This document shows, in pieces, positions 3,273 to 37,386 of a stretch of 64,000 nucleotides of DNA. Each line of letters begins with the position of its first letter. Within the stretch, counting starts at the first letter, position 1. A program made the translations under genes and the position numbers. The notes below the pieces were generated by a model, which ran no database searches, was not told the origin of the DNA, and saw only the letters and a list, made by a program, of their open reading frames with translations. The stretch lies in the sequence record LC768500.1. The stretch is one strand, 5' to 3'.

Positions 3273-4526
3273 GTGCACGATGATTTTTATGACCGCCATG
3301 ACCACGTTTTCGTTTTCGTGCAAAAATTTGATTTAGCTCATCCTGAACTAATAGACCGAACCGTAGAGGAGAAATTCGAAATTTATACTAAGGACTATCC
3401 CGATTATGATTGTTGGGCTCAACTGGTTTATTATTTCAAGGACGGCGGGGTGTTTTCACCAGAAGGGGTGAGACTTTCAATGAGGGGGATGGTGGTTTCT
3501 CCGTTGAAAAGACTCAACCGACCCATCCACGAAAGAATAAACGAAATGGTGTTCAGGGAAGGGGCGAAAAAACAGTCAGGTTATCCTAGGATAATGATCG
3601 GCGATTTAGGACTTTCAATGCACAGACTGATCGCATCTACTTTCATAAAAAGACCCGATCATTTAAAGCTTATCCCATTTATGCTTTTACACGTCAATCA
3701 TAAAAATGGGATTAAGAACGATTACAGACCTAATAACTTAGAATGGACTACTCCTAAGGAAAACGCGATCCATAGCGCCATGACGGGACTCACGCCACAG
3801 GGACTAGCCCACACAAAAACAATATCGGTACTCGGGTTCTTCTCTTTACCAGGAAAGTGGTTCGGGAAAACCATTTCATTTAGTGGAAATAAAGAGATTA
3901 ATTCCGCAGAACTGTTTTCTCAAACAATGATACACGAAAAGGTTAGGGAAGGTGGGTTGTACAAGGGTTTTAAGTGGATTAGCGTATCTGAAGAAGAGTA
4001 TAACAACCATCCACACGGTTTAGAAGATCCAGAATTTAAGAGATTTATCGACGAAGGGGGAAACACTTACCTTGATGAAAGAACTAATTTTCTTATAGGG
4101 ACAGTGATTCACGAATGCGCTTATAAAGGGCTGCAATTTATTATTTTCGGTGAAACAATGATCGAGCGTAACGGATTCCCGGCTAATCGTTTAATGGAGT
4201 TTTATAAATCCAAAGAATCGGATTCTTATTTATCAAAGGGATGTCTTTTTGTGAGGGGGGATCTGTCCGACCTTGAAAAATTTCCGCGTGGAATACCCGA
4301 TGAGCTGGTAACCATTTTATCTAGGGAGAGGGGAGATAAGTTCTATCCCGTGATCGCCAATAAAGATGGAGAGGATAAGTTATTTGCATCTAAAGAAGAG
4401 TTATCCGCGAACGGGTTTATTTATAAAGAGGTTAAGAAAAATATACGGGGAGAGACGGGAAGTCATAGGGGTCACGCATTCAGATGGGCGGAACGATTAT
4501 CGGGGTCGTTCCAACCGTCAGACTAG
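3273..4526 (+). CDS. Free-standing HNH homing endonuclease with C-terminal DNA-binding repeats
   Basis: MHRLIASTF...HVNHKNGIKNDYRPNNLEWTTPKENAIH is an HNH_3-type motif; GTG start with AGGAGG RBS. Confidence 0.88.
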   Translation: MHDDFYDRHDHVFVFVQKFDLAHPELIDRTVEEKFEIYTKDYPDYDCWAQLVYYFKDGGVFSPEGVRLSMRGMVVSPLKRLNRPIHERINEMVFREGAKKQSGYPRIMIGDLGLSMHRLIASTFIKRPDHLKLIPFMLLHVNHKNGIKNDYRPNNLEWTTPKENAIHSAMTGLTPQGLAHTKTISVLGFFSLPGKWFGKTISFSGNKEINSAELFSQTMIHEKVREGGLYKGFKWISVSEEEYNNHPHGLEDPEFKRFIDEGGNTYLDERTNFLIGTVIHECAYKGLQFIIFGETMIERNGFPANRLMEFYKSKESDSYLSKGCLFVRGDLSDLEKFPRGIPDELVTILSRERGDKFYPVIANKDGEDKLFASKEELSANGFIYKEVKKNIRGETGSHRGHAFRWAERLSGSFQPSD

Positions 4527-4659: not shown

Positions 4660-6708
4660 TCAAAATAAATCCATGACGTTAGAGAGATATTTATTTAACG
4701 GTAATGTTTCTGATTCATTATTCATGATATCAAATGACTCATTGCCGTCTATAACACGTAATGCTGGGTTATTAAGAGAACTCTGAGCTAATAATTGCTC
4801 GACGTTCTCTTTAGACCACTGCATGATATCTACGCTTCTGGTCATGATGTTTATTTCATTTCCAGTATCGAGTTCAATTAACCAGAAGAAACAAGGGGCG
4901 TCCTGCCCCTGTCTAAAGATCCTCGCCTTGGTTTGTTTCATTTCGTAATCGCGCCAAGGGGCGTCCATCATAATCTCCTGATTTGCAACGACCATGTGCG
5001 CCCCTTCCTTTAGGGTCTTAAAGGTCGTAACCCCAGGATTATACGTCGGATCATCAGTGAATATACTAATGAGTTTCTCTTTACTTAATTCTGCGTCCCC
5101 GTAAACGAGTAAGGGTTTTAATCCCTCTTCCTTAAGATAAGTGTTAACTTCATTAAGGACGTCGACATAAGAAGTAAAGATTAATGTTTTCTTTTCTACC
5201 TGATTAATAAGCCCTGGAAGATTAGCATGCCTTACTACTGATCTGACCGCATCAATCCTCGCTTTACCCAAGACATTCCCTAACGCCTCACCTTTGATCT
5301 TTAATCCCACATATTTTACTGCTGATTTAATATTTCTGAATTGTTTCAGTTTATCTCCTCGTAAGCGGGCTTCAATATCGATCTCGACGTTCTTAGCATA
5401 TTGAGAGTCTTCGGAGTCGGTGAAGTTATTATATCCTTGTGTTCTGAACTTATTAACGATCTGACGATAACGAACCAATCTTCCTAATTGGGATGGATCG
5501 TCTTTTACATAATGTTCGTAATCTTCCAGAACGTGATTAAAGAAATTGAGGAACGTTGGCATGTTTGTTTCGTAAAACTTAACACGCTGTTGTATGTAAG
5601 CTAACATGTCAAGTCGTATTGCTTTTAGAGTGAATCTTTCTCCGCCGGGTACGACGACTGGAAGCATGACTACGTCAGGTTCTTCATCTAGCCCCACAAC
5701 GCTGTCTATGACGTATCTCGTCTTTCCTAAGCGATGGGCGAGCAATTCATTGAGTTTATCTCTGGACAAGCCATAGGACTTCAGGAAGCGTTCTCGGGCA
5801 TTGCCTTTAAAGAATGGATCGATCGCACAGAACATCGGATATGTTTCTTTCCCGGAATTTTTTAACAAGGTTCCGCTCATAGGCAGAGCGTCTTTAAAGT
5901 CGAAGTGGTCTACAACGGAAATCAAGTTTTGCGTTTGTTTAGAGGAAAGTTCGTTAAAGTTATGGCTTTCATCGATAACAAGGTCGACCCCACCGTTGCC
6001 AGCAAACTCAAAAATGCGTTCCACCGCTTTAAAGAAATCCGGTGATCGGGTGGCTTCGATATGGAATACGTAATATTCGGCGTCTCTATCCAACGGTCTA
6101 TTTTGTCGAGTGGTCCAGTATTTGGGGGGAGTGACGAATACCTTTTCTTCAATGTGAAATTTCCAAACTGTATTTAGCACAACGTCAGGAGCAATAATGA
6201 TATGTTTCTTATTCCCCGTCAGACGCGTCCACATTAAGGCCGTAGGCGTTTTTCCTGAACCAGGTTTAGCGTCTAATAGCAATCCCTTTAGGTGATAAGA
6301 TGACTTAATTCCTTTATACATTTCTAAGAACCCCATCTGAGTAGGATGTGGTTTTATTTTAAACTGCTTTAAAAAAGAAGCTTTGTCTATCGGATAAGCT
6401 GTAGGGGTAACGGTATCCTTTATCCAAGTATCCGTTCTGAGTTTAATTTGGAGTTCGTTAAGGTTCTTGCGACTACTCCAGGTATTTCTTGACTGGAGTA
6501 TCTTTGTTATTAGATGATCCAACTCCAATAAGAAAAAGTTATCCGTAACGAACTTATTGGACCCAACACGTCTGAACATATAACGACCTGGCGTGCTTGT
6601 ACCATACGCGGTCTGTATGTCGTCATTAAAGTTACGGAAGTTAACATGATTGATTTCCGTAATAGTCGGTCCTTGTTTAACATCAGGCCCAAAGATATAG
6701 TTTAACAT
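4660..6708 (-). CDS. Superfamily 2 (SNF2/DEAD-like) helicase
   Basis: DAKPGSGKT (motif I), VIDESHN (II), MSGT (III), QTKARIFRQGQ (VI); start ATG 6708 or TTG 6714. Confidence 0.9.
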   Translation of the reverse strand: MLNYIFGPDVKQGPTITEINHVNFRNFNDDIQTAYGTSTPGRYMFRRVGSNKFVTDNFFLLELDHLITKILQSRNTWSSRKNLNELQIKLRTDTWIKDTVTPTAYPIDKASFLKQFKIKPHPTQMGFLEMYKGIKSSYHLKGLLLDAKPGSGKTPTALMWTRLTGNKKHIIIAPDVVLNTVWKFHIEEKVFVTPPKYWTTRQNRPLDRDAEYYVFHIEATRSPDFFKAVERIFEFAGNGGVDLVIDESHNFNELSSKQTQNLISVVDHFDFKDALPMSGTLLKNSGKETYPMFCAIDPFFKGNARERFLKSYGLSRDKLNELLAHRLGKTRYVIDSVVGLDEEPDVVMLPVVVPGGERFTLKAIRLDMLAYIQQRVKFYETNMPTFLNFFNHVLEDYEHYVKDDPSQLGRLVRYRQIVNKFRTQGYNNFTDSEDSQYAKNVEIDIEARLRGDKLKQFRNIKSAVKYVGLKIKGEALGNVLGKARIDAVRSVVRHANLPGLINQVEKKTLIFTSYVDVLNEVNTYLKEEGLKPLLVYGDAELSKEKLISIFTDDPTYNPGVTTFKTLKEGAHMVVANQEIMMDAPWRDYEMKQTKARIFRQGQDAPCFFWLIELDTGNEINIMTRSVDIMQWSKENVEQLLAQSSLNNPALRVIDGNESFDIMNNESETLPLNKYLSNVMDLF

Positions 6709-19545: not shown

Positions 19546-20598
19546 TCACTCTCGCTCAATTCTTTTAATAAAATAATTCTTATACATTCCATTGTTCCGA
19601 TAAGACCGATTCAGGTTAGCCGAGTTGGTTCCGAAATTGGTTAACTCTATTGTTCCGGTTAGTCTGGTGACGCACTTAGTGCGTTTATGAGTCAATTCCC
19701 ATATCACTCTGTCAGACCTATTCGACTTCCTCCCGGTTCTATCGTAATTATAATCTCTTATTGCATTTATCAAATTCTGCTCGGGATCTTTATAGTGTTT
19801 GGTGTACTCTTCCTTGGTTACCTCTTCCCATTTACATCCCTTATAGGTTTTAGCTTTACCTGTCCTAATGGCGTGAAGATTACGATTATCCAATCCAAAT
19901 TTAGCGCATTGTTCCTTGCCGCAAACGTATATCACTCTTTTCTTGAATCCTGGGATATCAATCACAGTACCTTTCATGGGAATGACGAAAGGATGCGACA
20001 AGTGCTTATGGGATACAAGGAGGTTATTCTCTTTGGCATGTTGCTTGTTCTGTTGTGGCGTGGTCCATTCTAATGAATTTACGTCGTTATCATCCTTTCC
20101 CTTTAAGTGGTTAACTTCAAGTTCAGAATAATCGTAAAGATTGAGCTCATCAGGTTTTGGAATCCAGGACGACGCAACGATCCTGTGCACCATCATTACG
20201 TATCCTGATTTCATATATACTTTATAACCAAAATGGCTAAACGTTCCTTTAACCATTTTGTACGTTCTTAAATTAAAAATTCTACCTCTGTTACTCACCC
20301 AAATATAAGTAAAAGATGTTGATGTTTTCTTATTAATATTGAGGTTCTTCGGGCTGTACGGAAAATAACTTGCCGGAACCCAATACTCTGATCTGGGATC
20401 TTCTTTTAATAATTTTGTTAACTTGGCATAATAAGCTTTCTTACGTTCTTCGTGCGATAAAAGATTCAATAAAGCGTTAGCCTTTTTTCCCATCGCATCA
20501 ATAATAGATTTATATTCTTTAACAAATAACGGGAGATTTCCTCTAGCTATTTCATCCCATTCTTCTTCAGTTCTTATTCGCGGCGGTCTGATTTTCAT
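19546..20598 (-). CDS. Free-standing NUMOD4-HNH homing endonuclease
   Basis: WVSNRGRIF (NUMOD4-like), VHRIVASSWI...EVNHLKGKDDNDVNSLEWTTPQQNKQH; GGAG RBS favours ATG 20598; AT-rich. Confidence 0.88.
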   Translation of the reverse strand: MKIRPPRIRTEEEWDEIARGNLPLFVKEYKSIIDAMGKKANALLNLLSHEERKKAYYAKLTKLLKEDPRSEYWVPASYFPYSPKNLNINKKTSTSFTYIWVSNRGRIFNLRTYKMVKGTFSHFGYKVYMKSGYVMMVHRIVASSWIPKPDELNLYDYSELEVNHLKGKDDNDVNSLEWTTPQQNKQHAKENNLLVSHKHLSHPFVIPMKGTVIDIPGFKKRVIYVCGKEQCAKFGLDNRNLHAIRTGKAKTYKGCKWEEVTKEEYTKHYKDPEQNLINAIRDYNYDRTGRKSNRSDRVIWELTHKRTKCVTRLTGTIELTNFGTNSANLNRSYRNNGMYKNYFIKRIERE

Positions 20599-20685
20599 GG
20601 TTACACTGCTCCAGATTACATTATTTATCATATAATAAGAAGCAGTGGTTTTCCATTAACAATACAAACCCTTGATATTAAAGGG

Positions 20686-31145: not shown

Positions 31146-31525
31146 TGATTGCAAATCACATTTGCACAGTCCCACTAGACGCGAAAGCTCTAGTGCGTAT
31201 CTCCTTGAATTGTCTGGGAAGCTCACAAAAGTCTGATGCCTGCTTAGCAGGAGCCGATAAGGCAGAAATAAGTTCAGACCTGACCTATGCTAAACAATAA
31301 GGCTAAGGGTTATTAACAAGGGGCCATCAGCAGCGAACCCTACTTCGGTAGGAGACGTTCAACGACTAGAGCGGAAGCGCTCGTACTCTTTACAGGGAGT
31401 AAAGAGGAAGTGGGGAGAGGGCTAAGTTCGGCACTAGCCGAATACGTCTAAGATATAGTCTCGACGTCCAAGGTAAGACTTGGAGTACGCTAAAGCGTAG
31501 GGGTGTGGAAACACCTTAAGAACCG
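31146..31525 (+). mobile_element. Group I intron (IA2-like), ORF-less, 380 nt, in the catalytic DFD|GD motif
   Basis: U|...G junctions restore the frame; P1 with U31145-G31169 wobble; AATTGTCTGGGAA, ATCAGCAG, GTTCAACGACTA (31357), AAGATATAGTCT (31450); P2, P7.1, P7.2, P8 and P9-P9.2 hairpins. Confidence 0.93.
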
Positions 31526-31699
31526 GGCGACCAGTTGAATTCTAATTCAATCAACGGAGAGGATGCTATTGCTGAAGCTAAAGCTTTAATGGGCAGACGC
31601 GATTACTATATCACCGGCACGGGGCAGTTCCTTTACAGTCCAACGGTGGAACCTCACGAATTCTTATTCCGAAATCTCAGTAACGGACTCAACCTATGA
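31526..31699 (+). CDS. Virion RNAP beta' N-terminal subunit, exon 2 (57 aa; spliced protein 537 aa)
   Basis: GDQLNSNSINGEDAIAEAKALMGRRDYY...NGLNL*; its TGA overlaps the ATG of beta (ATGA). Confidence 0.9.
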   Translation, partial: GDQLNSNSINGEDAIAEAKALMGRRDYYITGTGQFLYSPTVEPHEFLFRNLSNGLNL

Positions 31700-34600
31700 G
31701 CGTATTATACCAACAGTTCTTCCGTAATTTTGTTCTTAGGAAAAAACAAGAAATTACAAATCCTAAGTTTCACCATCTGACGGATATGGTGTTGCCGAGA
31801 GAATCGGTAATGATGTATCTACCGAAGACGCAAGAAGATATCGGCCCAAGTACCGAGGAGCCCTTAATAGGGACTTACCCTGATGGGGTTAACATTTATT
31901 TCAACAGTCTTTATATAACCCCCATCGGAAGAACTCGACCCGTTCCCTTTAACGAAAAGCAATCTATACAGCTTTATCGTAAAAGCCATTTCAAATACAA
32001 CTGGGCGAGGACGCTGTCCAACTACCTGAGCCGTCGTCAGGAACTGTTGGTAAACAACATAGCGATGGGACCCCATCGTCACCGTTATGTCTTTACTCGC
32101 TTTGTTCAGTTCGAACGAGCTTACAACCAACTGGCTTCTGGGATTGAAGCCGTTAAGCAAATGAGTAAGGAAACGACCCGCAATCAATACTGGCGAATAG
32201 AACTTCCTCCAAGCATCCCCGATTATCGTCAACTGCTGGTAGCCGTCGATCATTATAAGAAGGCGTTCAAAGACGGTGTTTATACCACCACTGACAATCA
32301 GGCTGTACTCCCGTTTAAGGGCTACGGTTCTTATTGGATCATGGATTGGTACCTCTTCTTGATAGGCGAAAAGAACTACAGTCTGTTTAATCGCTTAGAT
32401 AAAGAAGAAATGGATAAACTCCACATCATCTTTAGTCATAATGGACTCAGCTGGGTAGTTAACCTTGGTATCGTCTCTCAATGGATGGAAGAACTTAACG
32501 ACAAGCACGGCAATCCCACCAGTATGCGTGTTAACGCGGCTAAACGGTTCCTGCTTGGATTTAGGGCTCTGATAGCGGGCGGCACGCTAAGCGAAACCAT
32601 AGAGGAGAAATCTCATGCCGCTGAGAATGTCGGATTGGGTACTGGAACGCCAGAAGAGGAAAGAAGAAGCCAGGAAGCTAATAAGGAATCAGAAGAAGAA
32701 CCGCTGGATCTCGATGAGTCTGAAGAGATTACTGATCAGTCTGTTACTATGCTTGATCTTTTCATGGGCAGCAAAAAGGCTGATACAGAATCTGATGATG
32801 ACCAAGGAGGAGAGGATTCAGGAGGAGCTGATGAGAATCACGGAGAAGAGTGGGCTGCAGCGGTCGACGATGAATTACTTTATAACGCCGAAACAGAAGG
32901 ATTAGGGGAAACCAAGAAAGTTATTTTCAGTACCCCAGAATCTGGTATCCTGAGAGCCTTAGAGCAAAGAGCCAAGGCCGGGACATTAACTGTTGCGGAA
33001 CAACGTTATTACACTAATCTCGCGCAATCATACAAAACGATCAAAATGCCTAACGGTGAAAGTCTTGAAAGTTTTGTTAAGATCGATCAGGCCAAACTCC
33101 GCCACCTTCCTGCTAAAATTGCTCCTGAGATGAGAGGGATCATCGACCCTTCTCAGCTACAAAGTAGAGCGACCAATCTTAAAACGAAATACTCTGAAGA
33201 ATTCCTTAATCGGGATATAGCCGGGATGATACTGAACATTCAGAACGCCGGTATCGTTTTAACCGACCTGAAACGTGAACGTATCGTCAATGCGGAATCG
33301 GCTTACGACGTTTATACCATGAACGTCCATCCTGTTGGCGGATCGCCTAAGACCGCAATGTTCCGCATCCCCAAAATTGACAAAGACGGAACCTTCACTG
33401 TCGATGGGGTAAAACAACATCTTCAACTTCAGCGTATGGAAATACCAATTCGTAAGATAAACTCTGAGCAGGTTGCTTTGACGAGTTATTATGACCGCAA
33501 GATCATGATGTCTCGTTCGACAAAGGTTGCAGATGATTACGGATTGTGGCTGAACAAACAACTTATTCTGTTGGGTGAGGCCGGTAAAGTATCTGGGGTG
33601 TTGGGCGATGTCTATAATCGTAGTTACGCTGTTCCTCGTACTTATTCTGCGTTAGCCAAGCGGTACCGAACATTAAAGGCTGGTGGGATTGAATTCAACT
33701 TCGATCTTTCTAGTCTTGTTGGCTCAGAGAAAGAAATCAAGAAACTGATTTCTCCTAACTGGGTTCCGGTGGCTAAAGAAGGTGACGGCTTCATCTTTAT
33801 GGATGATGGCGGTAACCTTTACAAAGATAAGACACACATTGGTTCTTTCGAAAGCCGCTGTGGAATTGACACGACGAAGGCCCCAGTCGATATCGTTACG
33901 GTGAATGTAAACGGATACGCTTTCCCTATCGGTGTAGTGCTCGCTTACTACTTCGGATTCGACGAACTTCTTAAAGCACTCAATGCTGACTATCGGACCG
34001 TTCCGGCCGGTGAGAAAGTTCGGATGGGTCAGGACGAATACGCGATAACCTTTAACGACGAAACGCTTATTTTCAACAGACGGGATAGTTTAACCGCACT
34101 TATCATGGGCGGATTCCGGAAGTTAGCGAATCTCAGTAACTTCTCTCGCTATGACCTAAACACAAAAGGTGTATGGGTGCCGGCTATCGGGGATAAGAAA
34201 GTCAAACCTGGTCATTTTGATGAAATGCGTTTGATGTTCGAAATGTTCATCGATCCGATCACCAAATCTGAACTGGTTAAAAGGGGCTATCCGACTGAGC
34301 TTCATTATCTCATGATCGAAGGCGTGAAAATGCTGAACACCGATCGAACTGCTCACGAGATAGAATTAACTGAGCAACGTTTCGTTGGGTATGAACGTTT
34401 TGCTGGCCGAGTCTATAATGAGATTGTTAAGTCAACGCGTCAATTCAGGAATAAAGGTAACGACAAACGTTTCACCTTCGATATGAACCCTGAAGCGGTT
34501 ATCATGAGTATCATCACCGATACAAGTGTAAACCTAGTCGAAGAGGTTAACCCCATCCACGAAATCAAAGAACAGGAAGTTGTTACCTTTGGTGGTACTG

Positions 34601-34843
34601 GTGGGCGAAGTGAAACGACAATGGTCAGACGTACACGTGGTCAGCAAGAGAACTATGCTGGGGTTATCTCCGAGGCTGGTAAAGACTCCGGTAAAGTTGG
34701 GTTCGTGAGTTACTTAACGAGCAACCCTAAGATCGCCGATTTCCGTGGTAACGTCGACCTAAGCATGCCTGACACTCTGAGCGGCAGACTGTCGGTAACA
34801 TCCAACCTTTTAGCTCACTCGACCTCCGATGACCCAAAACGGT
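31696..34843 (+). CDS. Virion RNAP beta subunit (phiKZ gp178-like), exon 1
   Basis: TFGGTGG, GVISEAGKDSGKVG, SDDPKR = RpoB HDDANR. Confidence 0.92.
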
Positions 34844-34857
34844 TAACTGTAATATTT

Positions 34858-34889
34858 TCCTGAGTACAATATTATGTTGAGACTCAGGA
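34858..34889 (+). promoter_or_regulatory. RBS-sequestering hairpin upstream of the intron HNH gene
   Basis: TCCTGAGT (34858-65) pairs perfectly with ACTCAGGA (34882-89), covering AGGAG; TATG in the loop at 34873-76. Confidence 0.7.
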
Positions 34890-34899
34890 GCAAATTAAG

Positions 34900-35952
34900 A
34901 TGAAACCAATTGAGTGTAAAGATTTTCCAGGGTATTACGAGATACCCAATTTTTCCAAGTACTGCATTAATAAAAAATCAGATATTATTCATAAACGCAA
35001 AAACAAAAAAATCAGACAGTACGACGTTAAATCTTCTGTGACGTCCAGGCCAGAAACCGGGTGTTATAAAAGAGTGACGATGTATTCTGATGATAAAAAA
35101 CTCCACGCCTTTTCGGTCCATCGGTTAATGGGCTTGGTGTTTAAACATCCTGGTGCCGGGTTTCACTCTCTACAGGTCCACCACGGAGATGGGATAAAAT
35201 TTCATAACGACATCGATAACTTAGAATGGGTTACACCCAAGACCAATATTGTTTTAGCAAACGATTATTACATGGGTAAAGCTAAAATACCTGTCCAAGC
35301 TAGGTCTAAAAACGGTGAAGTTCTAAATTTTTCTAATCTAAGTGATTGTGCTAAATTACTCGGGATCCATAGGACAACCCTTATCTCCAGATTAAGTACG
35401 TTTGGAGAAAAGTTTGTTCACCCAGAGGGCTATCAACTGAGGTACGGAAATTCCGATAAGCCATGGGTTGCACCAGACGAAGAATCAGCTAAGGACTTAG
35501 ATGAGTTTTACTCGTCACCCATTTTGGTAAAAAATCTCAACACTGGCGAAGTGAGGGAATTTAAAACAGCCAAAGGCGTGATGGAATTAATAGTAAGATC
35601 TCCGTCAAGCATAAGTACTTTGAGTAATGATTCGACTCAACCCATTGTGATGGGTAAAGATAACGTACCGTACATTCTCATAAAAAAATATTCTGGGGTC
35701 GATTTCAGGAGAGTTGACGATCCAATGAATGATTTTGTCGAACAACAGACCAATACCAGAACGGTAGTTGCGACGAATGTTACGACTAATGAAAAGAGAG
35801 TTTATACGACCGCGCAGGCGTGCGCATCTGATTTTGGAATAGGAAAAACTACACTTAATTGGCGTCTTAAGAAACCCATCCCTGGTGTTTTCGACGGATG
35901 GATTTTTAGATATTACGAGGCCCGTATGGGAGGAAACACCCATACGCAATAA
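34900..35952 (+). CDS. Intron-encoded NUMOD4-HNH homing endonuclease with NUMOD1-like repeats
   Basis: YYEIPNFSKYCI, VHRLMGLVF...QVHHGDGIKFHNDIDNLEWVTPKTN, repeated F.....CA..LGI..TTL..RL helices. Confidence 0.92.
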   Translation: MKPIECKDFPGYYEIPNFSKYCINKKSDIIHKRKNKKIRQYDVKSSVTSRPETGCYKRVTMYSDDKKLHAFSVHRLMGLVFKHPGAGFHSLQVHHGDGIKFHNDIDNLEWVTPKTNIVLANDYYMGKAKIPVQARSKNGEVLNFSNLSDCAKLLGIHRTTLISRLSTFGEKFVHPEGYQLRYGNSDKPWVAPDEESAKDLDEFYSSPILVKNLNTGEVREFKTAKGVMELIVRSPSSISTLSNDSTQPIVMGKDNVPYILIKKYSGVDFRRVDDPMNDFVEQQTNTRTVVATNVTTNEKRVYTTAQACASDFGIGKTTLNWRLKKPIPGVFDGWIFRYYEARMGGNTHTQ

Positions 35953-36277
35953 TCTTTAATTGTTCTGGGACGATCTCGAAGACTCTCATACCAAAGCGGA
36001 ATACGAAAGTATAGACGTCATGGTTTTAAAAGTTGAGAAGAGAGACGATCTAGCAGCGAAGCACCTACGTATCTTCGAGAGAAGAGATAGGGTGAACGTT
36101 CAACGACTATGGGTGAAACTCCCAGTAGATTTTACATGAAGTAATTTCGAAACAGGATTCCCTTCGAGTGAGCTGAAGAAGCTCGATACTCATGGGTGAA
36201 ATATAGTCTGCTCCCTACGGCGACGTAGCGGCGGGTGTCATAGCACACCGGGTTGAAGGAAGCAACCGGACATAAGG

Positions 36278-37386
36278 CTCTGTTCTCCGGGGTTCAGCAA
36301 AGCCAGGGGGTGTCTGCGACTAACTATCAGACCAACTGGTTACGTACCGGGGATGAATTGGTTATCGCACACCGGACATCCGAGCTTTATTCTAAACCAG
36401 CTAAACTCGACGGTAAAGTAATAAAGCTTACCAAAGAAGGCTTGGTGGTCGAATACAAGGATGGAACGACGGACAGTTATCCGTTAGGCTTAACCATCGG
36501 CAGTGCGTCTGGTGAATTCCACAGACACACAAGAGTCACTGATTTAAAAGTTGGTGATAGTTTCAATGCCGGGGATATTATCGGTTGGGACGAAATGTAC
36601 TTTGAAAGGGATTTGGCTAACCCTAATCAGGTGGCGTGGAAATGCGGGGTAATGGTGAGGATTGCCTTTGTTGAGAATCAGTTCACGTTTGAAGACTCCA
36701 TTGAGGTTTCTAAAGACTTCGCTGAGCAGACGAAAACGCCTTATTTGAAGTTGAAAGAATTCTCTTTAGACTTCGAACAAACTCTCGTCCCTCACGTAGA
36801 AGTCGGGTCGGAAGTCGACATGGACGCGATTTTATGCTCGATAGAGGATCCCCACGTAAGTGGTCTGGACGATTCTGATGACACTTTCTCAGGATTAGAG
36901 CGTTTAGGGGTTAAACAAATTCGGTCTAACCATCATGGCCGTGTTGTTAAAATTGAGTGTGTTTATAACGGTTCAATTGAAGACATGTCAGATAGCCTGA
37001 AAGGGTTTGTGGCTAAGTTAGATAAAGAACGTCAACAGCTCAATAAGGTCACTCATACCGGGATCGTTAACGGTAACGTTGGGGGAAACACGTATGTTAA
37101 GAAAGCCAGTGTTGAACCTAATCGGGTTACGGTTAAAATCTTTATTGAGGATCTCAATAGCTCCGAAACCGCCGATAAATTTGTGGTCGGTAACCAGATG
37201 AAAGGTACCGTGGGGAATATCGTGAACTACACAATGCGTACACTGGATGGTCGTATTGTCAAGATTCGATTCTCATTTAAATCGATGTTCAACCGTATGG
37301 TTCTGAGCTTACGAGATAAAATGGGCATCAATGAAGTTAACGCCAACCGCACTTCGGCAGCAGTTAAAGCTTTCAGAGGAAAATAA
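36278..37386 (+). CDS. Virion RNAP beta subunit, exon 2 (spliced protein about 1418 aa)
   Basis: RIAFVENQFTFEDS, ADKFVVGNQMKGTV = RpoB GDKMAGRHGNKGV region. Confidence 0.9.

Follow-up and report, generated by a model that had tools for sequence, protein, structure and literature searches.

A group I intron in the vRNAP beta gene of phiKp_32

The DNA analysed here (the window) comprises the last 64 kb of the genome of the Klebsiella jumbo phage phiKp_32 (LC768500.1), of which no mention was found in the literature. Within it, the gene for the beta subunit of the virion RNA polymerase (vRNAP) is interrupted by a group I intron of 1434 nucleotides (nt) that carries the open reading frame (ORF) of an HNH homing endonuclease, at the coordinates given in an initial annotation made from the letters alone. 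The main features of the locus are as follows.

31696..34843, + strand: exon 1 of vRNAP beta (orthologue of phiKZ gp178 and PhiPA3 gp211), ending GAT GAC CCA AAA CGG T
34844..36277, + strand: group I intron, 1434 nt, absent from four phages of ~97% identity; Rfam RF00028; same-site homologues lacking the ORF in phages PS1 and CF8
34857..34890, + strand: 5′ leader hairpin, whose 3′ arm holds the Shine-Dalgarno sequence AGGAG (34886-34890) of the HNH ORF
34900..35952, + strand: HNH homing endonuclease ORF, 350 amino acids, in the loop of P1; identified by Pfam, I-HmuI (1U3E) and gp210 homology
35917..35922, + strand: internal guide sequence (IGS), from a pairing table over 11 introns
36278..37386, + strand: exon 2 of vRNAP beta, starting CT CTG TTC TCC GGG (S LFSG)

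When the segment 34300-36800 was compared by megablast, phiKp_32 itself matched at 100% identity, Raoultella phage VB_ZK_P1 matched at 98% identity with the intron included, and phages KPN8, BUCTxx100, YC1 and Miami matched in the flanks only (96.6-97.9% identity; 1067 of 2501 bases covered). The block missing from the latter four was found by direct comparison to be 34844-36277, exactly 1434 nt: the intron-less alleles read GAT GAC CCC AAA CGT GCT CTG at the site, and phiKp_32 reads GAT GAC CCA AAA CGG T, the 1434 nt, and then CT CTG. U34843 is thus set as the final base of exon 1 and G36277 (the terminal omega-G, adjoining exon 2) as the final intron base, because they are the sole pair that agrees with the reading frame and with the group I rules of a U before the 5′ splice site and a terminal intron G. 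The intron is of phase 1, following the DDPKR codons plus one base, so that the break falls within the universally conserved ‘DDxxRxL' motif of RpoB, one base into a codon. After splicing the frame would read DDPKR-S-LFSG, versus DDPKR-A-LFSG in the intron-less alleles. No second copy of the 24-nt intron-less target was found in the window with up to three mismatches allowed.

Exons 1 and 2 together measure 4257 nt, or 1418 codons, equal to the uninterrupted Miami coding sequence (CDS). By tblastn, exon 1 matches residues 1-1056 of the Miami beta protein at 98.9% identity, and exon 2 matches residues 1049-1418 at 99.5%. Among the uninterrupted homologues, that of Miami is annotated as RNA polymerase (RNAP) beta and that of phage N1M2 as virion-associated RNAP beta. 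Similarity to phiKZ gp178 is recorded for PhiPA3 gp211 and gp209 and also for 201phi2-1 gp273/274, the latter being entered as a single joined CDS that a mobile element interrupts, with the note that it was identified using mass spectrometry. In phiKZ, early genes are transcribed by a packaged polymerase, of which gp178 is the beta subunit (Birkholz et al. 2024, PMC11620839). The host gene of the intron is thereby the vRNAP beta gene of a nucleus-forming group, a status predicted for phiKp_32 from the Miami group, which is treated as a chimallin-encoding relative (PMC10299810); Miami also carries a tubulin-like gene.

Several proposals of the initial annotation are borne out by these comparisons. 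The group I intron itself is supported by the Rfam match (see below) and by its exact presence or absence among phages of ~97% identity; the junction 34843/36278 is the one on which intron-less alleles, the U/G rule and the reading frame agree; the RpoB-motif colinearity extends to a spliced ORF that matches the uninterrupted Miami gene in length and sequence; and the assignment of the host gene to vRNAP beta is upheld by its orthology to phiKZ gp178 and PhiPA3 gp211-209, as judged from annotations and tblastn.

In the public record, exon 2 is called from a TTG at 36253 (36253-37386), a start codon that lies inside P9.2 of the ribozyme, and the interrupted gene is recorded in GenBank as three separate ‘hypothetical proteins'. 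The VB_ZK_P1 record further contains a 59-amino-acid ‘gene', VBZKP1_273, that lies wholly within the ribozyme core (window 35960-36139; locus 5161-5340). One essential gene is thus mis-annotated in the two records as three or four ‘hypothetical proteins'.

The ribozyme fold

The Rfam family RF00028 (Intron_gpI) matched positions 35894-36230 with 51.9 bits (gathering score 50; E 2.7e-10; model positions 1-253), and no other Rfam family exceeded its gathering score anywhere in the window. A consensus structure was derived with RNAalifold from six introns (phiKp_32, VB_ZK_P1, PS1, CF8, FishSpeaker and phiRU), and the elements were assigned as follows.

35923..35946, + strand: P2 hairpin, inside the HNH frame (stop codon 35950-52), with double-sided changes in most pairs
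35951..36208, + strand: catalytic core (P3, P4-P6, P7, P7.1/P7.2 and P8), from RNAalifold and Rfam
35951-56 / 36154-59, + strand: P3, consensus fold
35961-36055, + strand: P4-P5 with extensions, consensus fold
36056-36099, + strand: P6/P6a, consensus fold
36105-09 (GACUA) / 36204-08 (UAGUC), + strand: P7, invariant
36110-36149, + strand: P7.1 and P7.2 hairpins, between P7 and P3′, consensus fold
36160-36196, + strand: P8, consensus fold
36213..36277, + strand: P9, P9.1 and P9.2 hairpins (36213-36267), then the 3′ splice site ...ACAUAAG-G36277

The consensus fold contains 97 pairs, among which 50-51 exhibit double-sided changes, with 91% of the cells paired, figures to be read with the caveat that the structure was derived from the same alignment that scored it. 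In controls, shifting the partners by 1-3 columns left 37-43% of cells paired and 6-21 double-change pairs, and shuffling left 76% paired and at most 35 double-change pairs. Compensatory changes are found in P3, P4-P6, P8 and P9, while P7 is invariant and hence uninformative. The two hairpins P7.1 and P7.2 between P7 and P3′ are, by the established classification, the signature of subgroup IA.

The 3′ end of the intron, GGACAUAAGG, is common to phiKp_32 and PS1. A search of IMG/VR with the 3′ splice-site pattern gave 23 matches, which were all due to chance and yielded no further same-site intron. The exact P7-P7.1 core string (AACGACTANGGGTGAAACTCCC) was present in five IMG/VR contigs, none with vRNAP beta or a related HNH gene nearby; these related ribozymes presumably reside in other genes.

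Guide sequence and exon pairing

Within the IGS, G35920 forms a wobble pair with U34843, and C35921 and C35922 pair with G34842 and G34841, respectively (P1); G35919 additionally pairs with the first intron base U34844 (+1, U.G), and GAG 35917-19 is complementary to the 3′ exon CUC 36278-80 (P10). The IGS coincides with Glu-Ala codons 12 codons ahead of the HNH stop. It lies 1.08 kb downstream of the 5′ splice site because the HNH gene occupies the loop that P1 closes.

This location of the IGS, which had been put forward in the initial annotation, is substantiated by covariation with the exon sequence across 11 introns of two site classes. The guide trinucleotide directly 5′ of P2 is G-Y-C in all 11: it is GUC opposite exon GAU in the seven introns that follow the two Asp (DD) codons (PhiPA3, 201phi2-1, 2050HW, Kodama, C-ZP2022, FishSpeaker and phiRU), and GCC opposite exon GGU in the four inserted 10 nt further 3′ (phiKp_32, VB_ZK_P1, PS1 and CF8). 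The pair between exon position -2 and the IGS thus covaries with the site class (A-U versus G-C). At least 10 of the 11 introns preserve the +1 pair, as U.G, A-U, C-G or U-A, ten of them being read from the pairing table and the U-A of phiRU by eye with a corrected index. Of the three P10 pairs, PS1 and CF8 retain those at positions 2 and 3, by way of A-U, C-G and U.G changes. The distance from the 5′ splice site to the guide is 10-86 nt in the ORF-less homologues, versus 1036-1300 nt in the HNH-bearing introns; the HNH ORF is therefore an insertion in the loop of P1 (L1).

Two other placements were rejected. The P1 of Rfam (35894-35925) is a local hairpin without the real exon. A guide close to the 5′ splice site (ACUGU 34847-51 with exon ACGGU) would leave a loop of only 2 nt and has no equivalent in the ORF-less homologues.

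The HNH endonuclease ORF

The encoded protein harbours an HNH motif at about residues 91-116 (including His95), together with helix-turn-helix (HTH)/NUMOD1-like DNA-binding modules at about residues 143-169 and 288-320. In Pfam, NUMOD1 scored 25.1 bits (cutoff 22.8) at residues 288-320, and the HTH matches at 143-169 were weak. The sole solved structure matched was I-HmuI (1U3E; E 1.5e-4), across the HNH motif (query vhHgDGikfhNdidNLeWVTpktN). A tblastn search of phage genomes with the protein returned 226 records; beyond the two carrier phages, the best matches were the intron ORFs of Serratia phage 2050HW and its relatives (32% identity; E 2e-30) and PhiPA3 gp210. No relatives were found by protein search in IMG/VR.

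The intron-encoded gp210 of PhiPA3 was matched with 28.7% identity over 96% of the length (tblastn; E 8e-27). His95, Asn107 and Asn116 are invariant in a five-protein alignment that includes gp210 and three others, and His95 aligns with His82 of gp210, whose change to Arg abolishes nicking (PMC11620839). The kinship with gp210 assumed in the initial annotation is thus sustained, with the two proteins 29% identical and co-linear and the catalytic His aligned. By this homology, the phiKp_32 protein is predicted to nick the intron-less allele.

The last ~12 codons of the ORF form a non-conserved C-terminal tail that overlaps the guide sequence and P2, and they are shaped by RNA structure rather than by protein function. 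At the other end, the leader hairpin that buries AGGAG folds at -15 kcal/mol (z = -3.06), and a comparable hairpin precedes the ORF in three of four other HNH-bearing introns (PhiPA3, 2050HW and Kodama). The hairpin over the Shine-Dalgarno sequence is likely to exert translational control.

Lateral spread and divergence at the insertion site

Between phiKp_32 and VB_ZK_P1, exon 1 differs by 3.6% (113 of 3148 nt) and exon 2 by 2.0%, yet the HNH ORF differs at merely 3 of 1053 nt, ~13-fold below the exons (versus exon 1, Fisher p ~1e-10 to 1e-13), and the HNH protein is 100% identical. Three differences fall within the 1277 nt made up by the intron leader, the ORF and the initial 168 nt of the ribozyme (0.23%; Fisher p ~1e-13), while the last 157 nt of the ribozyme (36121-36277; VB_ZK_P1 locus 5322-5478) are 8.3% diverged, largely by compensating pairs within P7.2 and P8. 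This distribution suggests a recombination breakpoint inside the intron, and it is most simply read as a recent lateral transfer of the ORF-bearing part that left a mosaic 3′ end. The variant bases of VB_ZK_P1 type in the 3′ third of the ribozyme also occur in the wastewater run X12.

Near the insertion site, the fixed differences from Miami and KPN8 are at -2 and -1 (TG to GT, Ala to Ser), +17 and +35, and phiKp_32 additionally differs at -8. The positions that differ from intron-less alleles are concentrated at -8, -2 and -1 (p ~0.005), and -2 and -1 are exactly guide-pairing bases. In Aeromonas phages, 11 of the 21 nt upstream of the site differ between PS1 (intron-bearing) and ACP1 (intron-less) while encoding the same DDSKRSL peptide, against a background divergence of ~7-10% (p ~1e-6 for the upstream excess). 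Either selection acting on the DNA target itself or co-conversion of a very short tract, with a distant donor, would fit this pattern.

Parts of the stretch occur in 24 public sequencing runs, for which a share near 0.46 is the expectation for intron-less alleles. When four RNA or mixed runs were compared with 34400-36700, two contigs skipped the intron; they read AAA AGG GCT, as the intron-less allele does, where ligated phiKp_32 exons would read AAA CGG TCT. Run X12, which is probably DNA, holds VB_ZK_P1-type intron sequence together with an intron-less (AGG-type) junction contig; both allele types are therefore present in one sample.

Related introns and endonucleases

The closest studied system is the gp210 intron of PhiPA3, which shares with that of phiKp_32 the host gene, the RpoB motif and a homologous ribozyme core, and whose ORF likewise occupies the P1 loop, with its end reaching or overlapping the guide (Birkholz et al. 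2024, PMC11620839). The PhiPA3 intron sits immediately after the two Asp codons (PMC11620839), with which our own reading of the loci agrees, and the introns of 201phi2-1, 2050HW, Kodama, C-ZP2022, phiRU and FishSpeaker likewise follow the DD codons directly. The phiKp_32 intron, in contrast, does not lie at this gp210 homing site: it is inserted 10 nt further 3′, with guide GCC rather than GUC and in phase 1 rather than 0, and its ribozyme can be aligned with that of PhiPA3 only distantly outside the core. Because of this 10-nt displacement with its matching guide change, the target of the phiKp_32 enzyme is not simply transferable from gp210, which nicks phiKZ gp178 and lowers phiKZ progeny; mutations that escape gp210 lie in the second Asp codon, at a distance of 2 nt from the gp210 site (PMC11620839).

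The introns of Aeromonas phages PS1, PS2 and CF8, which their records do not mark as introns, share with that of phiKp_32 the identical insertion point (..AA[A/C]GGT | CG TTG..) and the guide GCC. They contain no endonuclease gene and have an L1 of 31-43 nt, versus 1077 nt in phiKp_32. The PS1 intron measures 391 nt (..AAA AGG T | CG TTG..) and that of CF8 403 nt (..AAA CGG T | CG TTG..); both end in GGACA[T/G]AAGG, as in phiKp_32, and their ribozymes are 73-74% identical to 35946-36290 (blastn) with many compensatory changes. The 201phi2-1 gp273/274 and EL/phiRU introns interrupt the same vRNAP beta gene as well, but at the DD site, with guide GUC and without an ORF.

Further afield, I-HmuI, I-HmuII and I-BasI (phages SPO1, SP82 and Bastille; PDB 1U3E) likewise combine an N-terminal HNH with extended DNA-binding modules, and are borne by group I introns of phages that likewise interrupt a conserved motif of a polymerase. 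They differ in that the host gene encodes a DNA polymerase and the phages infect Bacillus; moreover, the crystallized I-HmuI chain of 174 amino acids is half the length of the phiKp_32 protein, and the match is limited to the HNH region. The DNA polymerase genes of these Bacillus phages are a classical example of related introns that occupy neighbouring sites in a single gene (PMC11620839).

Group I introns in vRNAP beta (PhiPA3, 201phi2-1), including one with an HNH gene in PhiPA3, were thus already known. New here are an unannotated intron, a second homing site with a matched guide, and cultured near-isogenic phages with and without the intron. The phiKp_32 intron represents a second, independently targeted member of the gp210 family in the same essential gene, and its insertion site and guide provide a clean example of co-variation that helps annotate the many unannotated introns of chimallivirus RNAP genes.

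Proposed mechanism and alternative explanations

Very probably, the element is a mobile group I intron with an I-HmuI/gp210-type HNH ORF that interrupts vRNAP beta in the DDxxRxL motif and operates as follows; that it is active, or recently was, appears the best-supported account of the sequences. In the pre-mRNA, the last exon bases GGU and the intron U+1 would pair with G-GCC at 35919-35922, 1.08 kb downstream. Guanosine would then attack after U34843, GAG 35917-19 would align the 3′ exon CUC, and exon ligation after G36277 would yield a 1418-codon ORF reading DDPKR-S-LFSG. Since the phage is predicted to form a nucleus, transcription and splicing would proceed away from ribosomes, so that folding need not suffer from an ORF that overlaps P1 and P2. 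After export, the 350-amino-acid enzyme with its tandem HTH/NUMOD modules may be translated, from the excised intron or from unspliced RNA, at its own hairpin-masked Shine-Dalgarno sequence and ATG. By homology it would nick intron-less alleles near the DDPKR-A-L codons, and repair by recombination from an intron-bearing genome would copy the intron together with the flanking -2/-1 change (TG to GT) needed for P1. Were the cut genome to lack a donor template, for example in separate phage nuclei, the nick would instead disable an essential vRNAP gene of the competitor, as in the PhiPA3/phiKZ scenario.

Several observations weigh against this account. P1 is short, with three exon pairs plus one intron pair; a possible extension via a bulged C35923 (C-4/G35924 and A-5/U35925) shows a compensating change in PS1 (A-U) and is lost in CF8, and its bases G35924 and U35925 also fit P2. 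The P1 of Rfam's own alignment is a local hairpin at 35894-35925, whose 5′ arm (ACGGAU) imitates the exon and which could compete with the real P1. The HNH_3 match in Pfam, at 23.7 bits versus a cutoff of 24.8, falls 1.1 bits short. As for cleavage site and specificity, the -2/-1 differences could make either allele resistant. Finally, the only intron-skipping contigs in the RNA or mixed runs carry the sequence of an intron-less allele, not the ligated phiKp_32 exons, and so have no bearing on splicing.

Among the alternatives, the least credible by far is that there is no intron, and that beta is instead split into two polypeptides by a free-standing HNH gene next to a fortuitous or dead ribozyme match. 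GenBank indeed lists three separate ‘hypothetical proteins', chimallivirus RNAP subunits are often naturally split, and the free-standing HNH gene gp179 of phiKZ adjoins gp178. However, the break falls inside an invariant motif of the catalytic region, one base into a codon; no start codon opens exon 2 at the junction, and the annotated TTG at 36253 is inside P9.2; the Rfam match (E = 2.7e-10) is accompanied by extensive compensatory changes; and colinearity with the uninterrupted Miami gene is exact. It is also improbable, though less so, that the intron is domesticated or decaying, with a ribozyme that splices, an endonuclease that is inactive or has no cleavable targets, and vertical inheritance only. 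The same-site ORF-less derivatives in PS1 and CF8 demonstrate that this family loses its ORF, and the HNH score in Pfam is marginal; yet the ORF is full-length and its catalytic motif intact, phiKp_32 and VB_ZK_P1 encode the same protein (100% identity) despite exon differences of 2-4%, and the circulating intron-less sites differ at only 3 of 24 nearby bases.

The remaining alternative concerns the outcome of nicking rather than the nature of the element. The initial annotation had suggested a phage-versus-phage weapon, and it is conceivable, though we rather doubt it, that interference is the main effect: the HNH protein would be imported into the nucleus of a co-infecting Miami-, KPN8- or YC1-like phage, nick its vRNAP beta gene and cut its yield, as gp210 does with phiKZ, so that phiKp_32 would gain in relative fitness. 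The gene, the conserved motif and the endonuclease family are those of the gp210 system (PMC11620839), the host species is shared with the intron-less relatives, and intron-bearing sequence occurs beside an intron-less junction contig in wastewater run X12. Separate nuclei with shared import are plausible given that Miami is treated as encoding chimallin (PMC10299810) and carries a tubulin-like gene, a scenario that is sketched by Birkholz et al., who consider closely related chimalliviruses with shared import and separate nuclei to be the most favourable case for a weapon (PMC11620839). On the other side, with flanks 97% identical, repair from the donor (homing) should be efficient wherever genomes mix; the near-identical ORF in two phages otherwise 2-4% diverged indicates an intron that spreads; native gp210 is excluded from the phiKZ nucleus, and its measured effect is 3.7-fold (PMC11620839); and, with an insertion site 10 nt from that of gp210, the target must be established afresh. 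Co-infection is no less likely to end in ordinary homing than in killing, and weapon-like behaviour would hinge on whether a nicked Miami-type genome reaches the donor and whether the enzyme enters the competitor's nucleus.

A broader interpretation, offered tentatively and as something that may well prove wrong, is that two related intron lineages, with targets shifted by 10 nt, compete for the vRNAP beta DDxKRxL motif of chimalliviruses (GUC to GCC, GAU to GGU, HNH ~29% identical). The recoding at occupied and empty sites (11 of 21 nt in PS1/ACP1; TG to GT) would then be the trace of an arms race between endonuclease and target, and phiKp_32 and VB_ZK_P1 versus Miami, KPN8, YC1 and BUCTxx100 would be natural pairs of the newly diverged kind with shared nuclear import, for which Birkholz et al. 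predicted that an intron endonuclease acts as a potent weapon and not just in homing. So far, gp210 versus phiKZ is the only experimentally studied ‘weaponised' intron endonuclease, where the strongest effects needed an artificial import tag and the phages are rather divergent (PMC11620839). The cultured Klebsiella jumbo phages with and without the intron, with flanks ~97% identical, make homing versus interference directly measurable, and with such pairs one can ask whether a selfish element is made competitive by the phage nucleus.

Other introns and HNH genes nearby

A second group I intron, of 380 nt and without an ORF, was found at 31146-31525 on the + strand, in the adjacent upstream vRNAP gene (orthologue of Miami_232, PhiPA3 gp212 and phiKZ gp180). 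Its Rfam match (37.5 bits; E 5.6e-6) is below the gathering score, and the intron is missing from Miami. The exons join as ..TTC GAT | GGC GAC.., and the first 24 nt of exon 2 hold eight differences from Miami, which are all synonymous (p ~3e-7). In GenBank this gene stops at 31148 and its exon 2 is unannotated.

Elsewhere in the window, the ORFs 3273-4526 (+ strand; 417 amino acids) and 19546-20631 (- strand; 361 amino acids) lie in blocks of ~1.5 and ~1.1 kb, respectively, that are absent from Miami. Both are weakly similar to the intron HNH protein, and 3273-4526 passes the Pfam HNH_3 threshold (25.4 bits). No ribozyme was detected beside either. Both ORFs probably represent homing endonuclease genes of the free-standing type.

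Further HNH genes and group I matches are present in neighbouring RNAP genes of Shewanella phage FishSpeaker (locus 902-2224 and 5965-6305) and Vibrio phage C-ZP2022 (locus 130-1450), the latter with a second Rfam match (40.7 bits) that adjoins a second endonuclease gene. The vRNAP gene cluster of chimalliviruses appears to be a general intron hot spot.

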